A stretch of 64,000 nucleotides of DNA, from the sequence record MT708547.1; one strand, written 5' to 3'. A program made the position numbers and the translations under genes. Positions 53,072 through 54,766 of the stretch are shown piece by piece; the stretch's first letter is position 1; each line of letters starts with the position of its first letter. The notes beneath the pieces are model-generated. The model made no database searches. It saw only the letters and a list, made by a program, of their open reading frames with translations, and was not told where the DNA came from.

Positions 53072-53121
53072 GGATGATTATAAATCTGAATTGACAGAAA
53101 CAGCTAAAACTGTTATTATCC
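53072..53121 (+). ncRNA. Repeated 50-nt ncRNA family A, copy 1
   Basis: GGATGAT/ATTATCC, TATAAATCTGAATTGACAG core, AACAG/CTGTT hairpin. Confidence 0.7.
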
Positions 53122-53129
53122 TATTTTAT

Positions 53130-53313
53130 TCCACAATCAGACGTATATGGTGTAAGTTACGTCGATGAAATCCAGAACAAGATCTCTGGTACTCTAGGAA
53201 GTGGTGAATGTTAACCTAGACGGGTTTGTTAATTGGACGATAAGCAATTAATACTTGACTAGCAGGTTTAAACTAGAGGTGACTGTCCTTCACTAAACTG
53301 GAAAACCGGATGG
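53130..53313 (+). ncRNA. Putative multi-hairpin ncRNA
   Basis: Hairpins GACGT/ACGTC, CCAGA/TCTGG, TCTAGG/CCTAGA, TTAATTG/CAATTAA, CTAG/CTAG. Confidence 0.45.
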
Positions 53314-53332
53314 ATTTTTAATTAAAAAAGTG

Positions 53333-53361
53333 TTGAACAAAATGTTCAATAATGATATAAT
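53333..53361 (+). promoter_or_regulatory. Sigma70-like promoter with a palindrome over the -35
   Basis: TTGAAC-N17-TATAAT containing TGAAC-N5-GTTCA. Confidence 0.7.
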
Positions 53362-53370
53362 AATTATCAA

Positions 53371-53443
53371 TGTAAGGCGTGGAACAATGTTTACATAAGT
53401 TACTTAGTAGCCTGTACGCCCCACGTCAAGGTAGCCGAAAGGC
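53371..53443 (+). ncRNA. Putative pseudoknotted ncRNA
   Basis: TGTAA/TTACA crossing GGCGTGG/CCACGTC; GCC-GAAA-GGC hairpin. Confidence 0.45.
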
Positions 53444-53452
53444 AAGTTTAAT

Positions 53453-53502
53453 GGGTGGTTATAAATCTGAATTGACAGAGACTATTAAAACAGTCACCAT
53501 CC
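53453..53502 (+). ncRNA. Repeated 50-nt ncRNA family A, copy 2
   Basis: GGGTGGT/ACCATCC; same core; GACT/AGTC. Confidence 0.7.
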
Positions 53503-53688
53503 AAATTTTAATTTAATAGTTTAGTATGAATAAAAAACAAATACATAAACAATATGATGAAATTGCAGTGAAGGTTTTTCGTGGTGAATTAGGTTATAAA
53601 CCATCTGTTAAATCTAAATATTCAAAATCTTCTTCACTAAAATTCAATCATAAAATAGAGTTTAAATAGTACTGGACAATAATATATA

Positions 53689-54138
53689 ATGAATATCACT
53701 AATGTAAAAGATTTTTTAGAATATTTTATTAAGAATACTCGTGCACGTGATGAATTAGAAAAGAATGGATTCATCCAAGGTTACGATTGCACTAATTTCT
53801 TTTATACTATTGATAAACATGAATATTATGTCGATGCAATTTTAATTGATGATGATGGGTATTGCGTTGGATTTTCGTTCGAAGATATATCACAAGATGC
53901 ACCAATAAACTTTTATGCATTATATTATAATAAAAAAGATAATATTTTGAAATTAGGATTTACCAGTGACACGGATGAAGATGTTGTATTCAATTGTAAC
54001 ACATGGTTGGAACATGATTCATTCTTTCAAAGTACATTAATTCATAACTTTATGACAACAGATTTAGAGTACTGGAAAACTTGTATAGAATTACTTAATG
54101 TAATTTATAATGAACAAGTCAAACAAAAATGGCAATAA
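53689..54138 (+). CDS. F[QM]xS-module family protein
   Basis: WLEHDSFFQSTLIHNFMTTDLEYWKTCIEL. Confidence 0.7.
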   Translation: MNITNVKDFLEYFIKNTRARDELEKNGFIQGYDCTNFFYTIDKHEYYVDAILIDDDGYCVGFSFEDISQDAPINFYALYYNKKDNILKLGFTSDTDEDVVFNCNTWLEHDSFFQSTLIHNFMTTDLEYWKTCIELLNVIYNEQVKQKWQ

Positions 54139-54203
54139 TCACAGAACGGTTCAGCATTTGGTAGTATGTTTGACTGAATAAAGCATAAACGTTTAAAAAA
54201 GTG

Positions 54204-54231
54204 TTGAACAAAAAGTTCAGTACTGTATAAT
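54204..54231 (+). promoter_or_regulatory. Promoter for tRNA-Arg
   Basis: TTGAAC-N16-TATAAT with TGAAC-N5-GTTCA. Confidence 0.65.
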
Positions 54232-54242
54232 TGACTTACTAC

Positions 54243-54316
54243 GTCCCCTTAGTTCAGTTGGATAGAACAACTGCCTTCTAAGCAGTAGGTCACTGGTTCG
54301 AGTCCAGTAGGGGATA
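54243..54316 (+). tRNA. tRNA-Arg(TCT)
   Basis: ACTGC-CT-TCT-AA-GCAGT; ACTGG-TTCGAGT-CCAGT. Confidence 0.92.
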
Positions 54317-54372
54317 TACCATACAATATGGGAATAGTTAGAAGATATTCCCAATTTTAATTTAAAAAAGTG

Positions 54373-54401
54373 TTGAACAAAAAGTTCAATAATGATATAA
54401 T
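54373..54401 (+). promoter_or_regulatory. Promoter for tRNA-Ser(GCT)
   Basis: TTGAAC-N17-TATAAT with TGAAC-N5-GTTCA. Confidence 0.7.
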
Positions 54402-54471
54402 GGTATTATAAAAGATTGTAATACATAATATTAACTTTTAAGAACATAATTAAGTTATCATACACAAATTT

Positions 54472-54558
54472 AGTGAGTTGGATGAGTGGTTGAAATCACC
54501 ACCCTGCTAAGGTGGCATATGCGAAAGCGTATCGTGGGTTCGAATCCCACACTCACTG
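54472..54558 (+). tRNA. tRNA-Ser(GCT), CCA not encoded
   Basis: AGTGAGT/ACTCACT, CCACC-CT-GCT-AA-GGTGG, long variable arm, G73. Confidence 0.92.
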
Positions 54559-54579
54559 TAAAATTCAATTAAAAAATTG

Positions 54580-54608
54580 TTGAACAAAAAGTTCAGTACT
54601 GATATAAT
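54580..54608 (+). promoter_or_regulatory. Promoter for tRNA-Ser(TGA)
   Basis: TTGAAC-N17-TATAAT with TGAAC-N5-GTTCA. Confidence 0.7.
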
Positions 54609-54620
54609 AAAAGAATAAAC

Positions 54621-54708
54621 GGAAGGATGGCCGAGTGGTTTAAGGCACTGGTCTTGAAAACCAGCAATCCGAAAGGGTTCTAGAGTTCAAATCTCTATCC
54701 TTCCACCA
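54621..54708 (+). tRNA. tRNA-Ser(TGA)
   Basis: GGAAGGA/TCCTTCC, CTGGT-CT-TGA-AA-ACCAG, long variable arm, ends ACCA. Confidence 0.92.
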
Positions 54709-54716
54709 GATTTCAT

Positions 54717-54766
54717 GGATAGTTATAAAGTTGAATTAACAGCGACACTTAAAATTGTCACTATCC
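54717..54766 (+). ncRNA. Repeated 50-nt ncRNA family A, copy 3
   Basis: GGATAGT/ACTATCC; TATAAAGTTGAATTAACAG; GACA/TGTC. Confidence 0.7.

Follow-up and report, generated by a model that had tools for sequence, protein, structure and literature searches.

A 50-nucleotide branched element with a sigma-70 promoter consensus in the RNA-gene cluster of Klebsiella phage Muenster and in unrelated enterobacterial phages

Composite terminator/promoter cassettes, the promoter-early stem-loops (PeSLs), have been described in T4-type phages (PMC2839356, PMC4122927). Another kind of phage RNA signal, put of HK022, binds the beta' zinc-binding domain of RNA polymerase as a nascent two-hairpin RNA (PMC9378689). 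Here we describe an element of 50 nucleotides (nt) found three times in a stretch of 64,000 nt of sequence record MT708547.1, called the window below. By analogy, it is best read as a variant of the PeSLs. Both join a sigma-70-like early promoter (TTGACA-N17-TATAAT-like) with an RNA stem-loop and an AT-rich stretch, and both are placed between small non-essential genes, in plastic regions with indels and degraded half-copies. In the PeSLs, however, the promoter is directly preceded by a simple, separate hairpin (PMC4122927); in our element the promoter is contained in the folded 50 nt, which form a branched three-way junction with invariant unpaired bases. The element is also present in one to three copies per genome rather than dozens, and it occurs in a podophage as well.

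The window is 100% identical to Klebsiella phage Muenster (MT708547.1), a 347-kilobase (kb) RaK2-like jumbo myophage of the genus Alcyoneusvirus; record coordinates are window coordinates plus 248,000. The elements sit in a cluster of tRNA and small-RNA genes (tRNA-Leu, Gly, Arg, Ser, Ser and Asn; ARAGORN counts six tRNAs in the window), which also has a group I intron, HNH endonuclease genes and repeated early promoters. A first reading of the letters alone, the sequence-only reading, had reported three copies of exactly 50 nt with variable closing stems and a conserved core, and all of these are present on the plus strand:

53072-53121, plus strand: copy 1, promoter-grade, closing stem GGAUGAU/AUUAUCC, junction UAUAAA
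53453-53502, plus strand: copy 2, terminator-slot type, closing stem GGGUGGU/ACCAUCC
54717-54766, plus strand: copy 3, terminator-slot type, starting 8 nt past the CCA of tRNA-Ser(UGA)
54621-54708, plus strand: tRNA-Ser(UGA) gene, upstream of copy 3 (ARAGORN and Rfam)

Folded alone, each copy gives the same minimum-energy structure, (((((((......((((......))))((((........))))))))))). It consists of a closing stem of 7 base pairs (bp), a 6-nt UAUAAA junction, a 4-bp hairpin 1 with the loop AAUUGA or AAUUAA, and a hairpin 2 of 4 to 5 bp in the window copies, with the loop YUAAAAY, which abuts both hairpin 1 and the closing stem. In copy 1, hairpin 1 reads UCUG-AAUUGA-CAGA and hairpin 2 reads AACAG-CUAAAA-CUGUU. 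Folding energies range from -9.7 to -12.9 kcal/mol, with z-scores of -2.4 to -3.4; the reverse strand of the three copies did not give the same fold. A covariance model, R1, scored the copies at 72.8 to 77.0 bits, against 15.8 bits for the next best site in the 64-kb window, and the core pattern had three exact matches there. The three copies are thus genuine and are the only ones in the 64 kb.

Homologues were collected by BLAST, pattern scans and model R1; in the large collections the search relied on exact patterns, which diverged members would escape. As the sequence-only reading had proposed, phage genomes were searched with the covariance model, and homologues were found in RaK2-like and 121Q-like jumbo phages and in Klyazma-like podophages. 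The recovered family comprises 14 distinct full-length variants and one truncated copy. RaK2-like phages have three copies apiece, and Asteriusvirus phages of the 121Q/PBECO4/SD-6 type have one. EJP2 has a distinct copy between tRNA-Ser and tRNA-Arg, UE-S1 a 3'-truncated copy at a gene-replacement junction, and Turkey5 no copy in the equivalent region. The element was also found in unrelated podophages of about 50 kb, namely Klyazma (Zobellviridae, Citrovirus), Asterion and two metagenomic contigs. Between unrelated phages its identity is 82%, and from these sequences the cassette appears to have moved between unrelated phages of Enterobacteriaceae.

Wider searches added little. The strict core pattern had more than 115 matches in IMG/VR, but the closing stem paired only in L035, L081 and L100; the remaining matches were rejected as chance matches in coding sequence. 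Two further patterns, one tighter and one relaxed, gave only chance matches in IMG/VR and no new locus that scored with the covariance model. The relaxed pattern matched 115 times in 185,579 bacterial and archaeal genomes; of the 100 loci examined further, not one reached E<=0.1. Cellular genomes thus yielded no copy of the element. The metagenome scan contributed variants L261 to L266 but no additional phage group. The view that no family could be assigned was borne out: nothing in Rfam 15, including the small self-cleaving ribozymes and riboswitches, overlapped the elements of the window at gathering score or at E<=10, Rfam had no match at E<=1 at the Klyazma locus, tRNA and tmRNA detection returned nothing at the elements, and the sequence was not found in the literature searched. 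The proteins encoded 3' of the elements belong to no common family.

We then consider the pairing across the 14 variants. Standard pairs are formed in 98.1% of 210 pair cells, and both-sided changes occur at five pairs (28 cells). None of 500 shuffles matched the observed pairing or covariation score, although these statistics overstate independence, the 14 variants being related sequences. When the register was slid, pairing fell to 30 to 63%, and RNAalifold applied to the variants yielded the identical structure. G.U pairs were found in 18 cells, on the plus strand only; on the opposite strand these would be A.C mismatches, so the folding strand is the sense strand, whether as RNA or as single-stranded DNA. 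The idea of a selected structure, put forward by the sequence-only reading, is therefore supported for the sense strand. One of its helices was not: a C-G to T-A swap had been noted around TGAATT (columns 15:22), but in the homologues that helix is paired in just 35.7% of cells. Hairpin 1 is formed instead by columns 14-17 with 24-27, and pair 14:27 covaries as U-A, G-C and A-U.

Other features are even more constant than the stems. The unpaired UAUAAA, AAUURA and UAAA are conserved far above them, and the length is exactly 50 nt in 14/14 variants. Hairpin 2 always takes up 16 nt while its split into stem and loop varies (5+6, 4+8 or 6+4), so that across the family its stem has 4 to 6 bp and its loop 4 to 8 nt; besides YUAAAAY, the loop may be CUAACA (EJP2) or UUUA (L262). 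In the Citrovirus copies the closing stem gains three pairs, GCC/GGC. Inspection of the variant flanks by eye revealed no conservation of a pseudoknot between UAUAAA and the downstream U-tract.

By its consensus, the element carries a sigma-70 promoter. The -35 corresponds to element positions 20-25, TTGACA (TTAACA in some variants), and extends over the loop of hairpin 1 and its 3' half; the spacer, always 17 bp, corresponds to hairpin 2; and the -10 (positions 43-48) is the 3' strand of the closing stem. The fixed spacer predicts the constant total length of 50 nt and the 16 nt of hairpin 2, which an RNA loop does not. The invariant columns comprise the whole -35 except for G/A at position 22, and G41 (-14), A44 (-11), A47 (-8) and T48 (-7). 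The -10 is TATTAT in copy 1 and Klyazma, TATCAT in Asterion, TACTAT in EJP2, and CACCAT or CACTAT in elements of the copy 2 or copy 3 type. In the promoter scan, copy 1 (TG-extended) and Klyazma had 11/12 consensus positions and were among the best sites of their regions; by hexamer count, Asterion has 11/12 and EJP2 10/12. For copies 2 and 3 and the 121Q type the count is 8-9/12, some with TTAACA. The hexamers in the window are:

53091-53119, plus strand: predicted sigma-70 promoter in copy 1 (-35 TTGACA at 53091-53096, 17 bp, TG-extended -10 TATTAT at 53114-53119)
53472-53477 and 53495-53500, plus strand: -35 TTGACA and weak -10 CACCAT of copy 2
54736-54741 and 54759-54764, plus strand: TTAACA and CACTAT of copy 3

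The position of several copies argues in the same direction. According to the promoter scan, copy 1 is the sole promoter-like site from tRNA-Gly to a conserved RNA block of about 180 nt, which starts 6 nt beyond it. When the region is aligned to WPEC5 and SD-6, copy 1 falls in the slot of a canonical early promoter (CTTGACT...TATAAT), which it replaces, immediately 5' of the almost invariant block. From this arrangement, copy 1 appears to drive the RNA block. On the early strand of Klyazma, only three sites with at least 10/12 consensus positions were found in 20 kb; they are grouped in a stretch of about 830 bp that precedes the first early gene at the genome end, and one of them is the element, 28 nt from the ATG of that gene. 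In EJP2, 22 nt separate the element from the downstream tRNA-Arg. Copy 3 differs in that a further promoter stands between it and its downstream gene.

The T4-type late promoter motif TATAAATA is used by a gp55-type sigma factor. Compared with it, the element has an invariant TATAAA, but the next two bases vary (TC, GT, GC, AC), and TATAAA is as strongly conserved in the podophage copies. Relatives of these jumbo phages have been reported to use ATAAATA late motifs (PMC5259590). The sequence-only reading had named a purely DNA-level role, such as TATAAAT acting as a late promoter, as an outcome that would speak against an RNA structure. A promoter is indeed predicted, but through TTGACA-17-TATTAT rather than TATAAAT, and the role is not purely DNA-level, because the compensatory changes and strand-specific G.U pairs persist.

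Copies 2 and 3, which have a poor -10 and a G/C-richer closing stem, are found in another setting:

53504-53516, plus strand: U-rich trailer AATTTTAATTTAA after copy 2, then a small open reading frame (ORF) at 53526-53669
54768-54780, plus strand: U-rich trailer AATTTTAATTTAA again, 3' of copy 3; the intron-containing tRNA-Met gene comes next, preceded by its canonical promoter (TTGACA at about 54789)
54330-54365, plus strand: comparator, a plain hairpin GGGAATA-9 nt-TATTCCC (54330-54352) with the identical AATTTTAATTTAA, then a canonical promoter

Further plain hairpins, such as the one at 50926, likewise have a near-variant of AATTTTAATTTAA on their 3' side and a canonical promoter beyond it. 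Since the same trailer follows the plain hairpin and copies 2 and 3, these two copies occupy the slot of a terminator hairpin, and the wider layout around them is promoter, gene, hairpin, promoter, which is reminiscent of the PeSLs of T4-type phages (PMC2839356, PMC4122927). The jumbo-phage copies share with intrinsic terminators a stem that leads into a U-rich tract, and they have the genomic slot and the trailer of plain terminator hairpins. In Asteriusvirus the copies are followed by A and 7 to 9 U; the U-tract is good in this genus and moderate in Alcyoneusvirus. The upstream neighbours were as the sequence-only reading had described them, copy 3 lying after tRNA-Ser(UGA) and copies 1 and 2 after conserved structured non-coding blocks. 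The arrangement of a tRNA CCA, 8 nt and the element is seen with two different tRNAs, in Muenster copy 3 and at L263:1758, and A/U-rich stretches of the AG/UUU type lie directly 5' of most copies.

The explanation we tentatively prefer, with slightly less than even confidence, is that each copy is a 50-bp cassette in which a terminator or insulator overlaps a promoter, acting at both the DNA and the RNA level. Initiation, termination and processing are what we infer from the structure and the promoter consensus, which can be read from the sequences directly. As DNA, judging by consensus and position, the cassette would be a promoter for host sigma-70, with the -10 YAYYAT and G at -14, and the downstream gene would be transcribed from a start about 7 nt beyond it. 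As RNA, in transcripts running in from the upstream tRNA or small-RNA gene, the 50 nt would fold into a Y-shaped three-way junction which, with the U-rich tract that follows, may end or insulate the upstream unit, its role being that of a terminator or of a 3'-end hairpin for protection or processing. The elements would then end one small RNA gene and start the next. Copies may be tuned differently through the closing stem: the good promoters would be those with an A/U-rich stem (AUUAUCC, AUCAUCC, or ACUAUCC with T at -12), as in copy 1, the Klyazma-like podophages and EJP2, and the poor ones those with G/C-richer ACCAUCC or ACUAUCC and a U-tract in a terminator slot, as in copies 2 and 3 and the 121Q-like phages.

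Several observations weigh against this cassette. A U-tract is missing from the Citrovirus and EJP2 copies, which means that termination cannot apply to every copy, and some copies have an A/U-rich closing stem. The interior of 36 nt is branched, which is unusual in an intrinsic terminator, where the loop has 3 to 8 nt, and the terminator scan made no call at the element. The copies with poor promoters (2, 3 and the 121Q type) still keep all other conserved positions, so promoter selection alone is insufficient as an explanation, and the cassette leaves unexplained why TTGACA is kept although the -10 is weak. The UAUAAA junction, A18-A19 and the mostly conserved UAAA loop fit neither a promoter nor a simple terminator. 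Together with the retention of TTGACA, these invariant bases leave room for a function through an RNA partner, be it a processing signal, a decoy or a put-like antiterminator. The relatedness of the variants, mentioned above, also counts here.

One such function would be that of a dedicated RNA motif read by a host or phage factor, as a signal for processing or stability involving RNase P, Z or E, or as a tRNA-like decoy, the promoter likeness being incidental or secondary. We regard this as doubtful. It would account for the strong conservation of the unpaired bases, for a structure kept where the promoter is poor, for the spacing after the CCA of two different tRNAs and for the AG/UUU-type stretches 5' of most copies. 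In addition, the 7-bp stem is joined to the 4-6-bp hairpin without junction nucleotides in all variants (at the level of secondary structure), and the two could stack as an acceptor/T-arm helix of about 12 pairs, which, with the location of some copies directly 3' of a tRNA, recalls mascRNA-type signals and RNase P minihelices. But the element has no T-loop consensus, D arm, anticodon arm or CCA: its loop has 4 to 8 nt instead of the 7-nt UUCRANY T-loop, L262 has UUUA in place of UAAAA, and CCA does not follow it. Neither ARAGORN nor the tRNA model of Rfam (RF00005, even at E<=10) gave a signal at the elements of the window. The proposal of the sequence-only reading that the geometry mimics the acceptor stem and T-arm of a tRNA, as an RNase P/Z signal or a decoy, is accordingly unsupported, helix geometry being the only testable feature that agrees. 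Moreover, TTGACA-17-TATTAT with TG in promoter slots is improbable by chance, and the constant total length is unexpected for an RNA hairpin loop. A bolder version, that of a new class of phage RNA acting through a specific partner (RNA polymerase, for processive antitermination, or a host nuclease or defence protein recognizing a tRNA-minihelix mimic), exchanged between jumbo myophages and podophages for an advantage in Enterobacteriaceae hosts and with the promoter secondary, we consider unlikely.

The antiterminator variant can be stated more precisely on the model of HK022 put. A nascent two-hairpin RNA would bind the elongating polymerase so that downstream terminators are read through, and the -10-like NANNAT would cause a sigma-dependent pause that aids RNA folding. 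The putL RNA, of about 70 nt with two stem-loops, has a conserved weak -10-like NANNAT (PMC9378689), and, like put, our element is a short phage RNA with two hairpins near early promoters, in which YAYYAT is invariant; in the podophages it heads an early operon of about 25 kb, directly 3' of a repeated AATGCTATCATC, with the predicted start at the stem foot. This explanation nevertheless seems very improbable. Size and architecture differ, a 50-nt element with a closing stem against the V-shape and triplex described for put, and no sequence or model similarity was found between the two. In the jumbo phages the copies come after tRNA genes, at 100 to 300 nt from promoters, a location in which a sigma-dependent pause is improbable, and a pause does not need a full -35 at exactly 17 bp. 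At the other extreme, the element might act as DNA only, a promoter whose nested inverted repeats provide operator half-sites or form a cruciform, the RNA fold being functionless. Promoter consensus and placement agree with this, but compensatory changes in three helices are a misfit for conserved protein half-sites, the 18 G.U cells, A.C mismatches on the other strand, disfavour a cruciform, and the Citrovirus stem is longer by the three GCC/GGC pairs; we judge it quite unlikely. Least probable, in our estimation, is a small mobile repeat or recombination hotspot, resembling a miniature inverted-repeat transposable element or a PeSL and retained mainly through spread and cassette shuffling. 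In its favour are the 82% identity between unrelated phages, the presence or absence of the element among close relatives and the truncated UE-S1 copy at a gene-replacement junction. Yet target-site duplications were not present in the variant flanks examined by eye, there are just one to three copies per genome, the stems are compensated while loops and junction show strong conservation, and block indels, as in Turkey5, end at canonical promoters rather than at the element.

The elements have further structured RNAs as neighbours:

53128-53312, plus strand: conserved structured RNA block of about 180 nt, 3' of copy 1
53376-53452, plus strand: structured module of about 77 nt upstream of copy 2, with a stem GGCGUGG/CCACGUC (53376-53382 with 53421-53427) and a GCC-GAAA-GGC hairpin (53434-53443)
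52961-53071, plus strand: Alcyoneusvirus-specific non-coding module of 111 nt, from tRNA-Gly to copy 1

The block of about 180 nt recurs, end to end and with 84 to 100% identity, in 55 phage records that represent three unrelated groups: the Alcyoneusvirus/Asteriusvirus jumbo phages, the T4-like Bragavirus and the T5-like Novosibvirus. Other loci are L272:2501-2685, L273:2501-2679 and L274:2501-2680. In Bragavirus and Novosibvirus it lies between two tRNA genes, 2 to 13 nt away, as expected of a co-processed stable RNA. The block is unannotated and shows some compensatory changes and a variable hairpin; it had no Rfam match, and its sequence was not found in the literature searched. The covariance model found no copy of the 50-nt element in the Bragavirus or T5-like loci bearing this block.

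The module of about 77 nt, which also has an inner 5-bp hairpin, accompanies copy-2-type elements in Asteriusvirus and in the metagenomic L262, where the counterpart is on the minus strand at about 420-345 and shows compensatory changes (C-G to U-A, U.G to A-U); EJP2 has the hairpin only. The module may be part of a long structured leader for a conserved Lys/Ser-rich ORF of 47 to 50 amino acids (aa), at 53526-53669. The 111-nt module is closed by a helix of 7 bp, AACAGGU/ACCUGUU, with partial compensation in L263, and has a possible pseudoknot in which GUGUACA/UGUACAC is interleaved with GGGUUA/UAACCC; its folding energy was no better than that of shuffles. Some annotated small hypothetical-protein coding sequences (CDSs) overlap the RNA modules and copy 1, among them CPT_Muenster_461 (52987-53094), WPEC5_CDS0220 (L122:8074-8283) and equivalents. 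Muenster has a 42-bp promoter insertion (53320-53361) that breaks the 69-aa frame annotated in the Asteriusvirus records. Such CDSs are likely annotation artefacts.

Downstream of copy 3, a tRNA-Met/Ile2(CAU) gene (54826-55136, plus strand) is interrupted immediately after the anticodon by a 231-nt group I intron (Rfam RF00028, 104 bits). Its exons, 54826-54865 and 55097-55136, align with the uninterrupted tRNA-Met of WPEC5, and the gene is not annotated in MT708547. ARAGORN made no call on the joined exons, perhaps due to the 12-nt D-loop. A perfect 12-bp palindrome, TTCAGTACTGAA, has 23 matches with at most one mismatch in the window, compared to 0.34 expected (e.g. 9498, 17936, 26002, 32605, 42139, 50450 and 60326; also 54216, 54592 and 54800). 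Many of the sites seem to lie outside the RNA-gene cluster, and early promoters in the tRNA cluster have a near-copy as their spacer. A phage regulator may bind the palindrome, or it may serve as a signal in DNA of some other kind.

In the podophages, the AATGCTATCATC mentioned above is a TG-extended -10-like motif without a conserved -35; six intergenic occurrences were found on the early (minus) strand of Klyazma (L260), at 39027, 43655, 45530, 47238, 48832 and 49283. The one upstream of the podophage element would put the transcript start at the stem foot. A non-coding stretch of about 350 to 400 nt past the terminal repeat is conserved in Klyazma, Asterion and L035 (L117:740-1120), and Asterion has a tRNA-like 3' end, GGTTCGATTCC, about 40 nt before the element.

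If the overlapping cassette proves to be the right explanation, a single 50-bp sequence would be under two constraints, as a promoter in DNA and as a three-way junction in RNA. The closing stem would embody a trade-off between the two, an A/U-rich stem making a good -10 and a G/C-richer one a better hairpin. Such a cassette would be a compact, portable device with which dense phage RNA-gene clusters insulate one unit and restart the next, and a useful part for synthetic biology. Its distribution suggests that small regulatory cassettes travel between unrelated phages sharing hosts, and the element and its neighbours flag a cluster of unannotated conserved phage RNAs.

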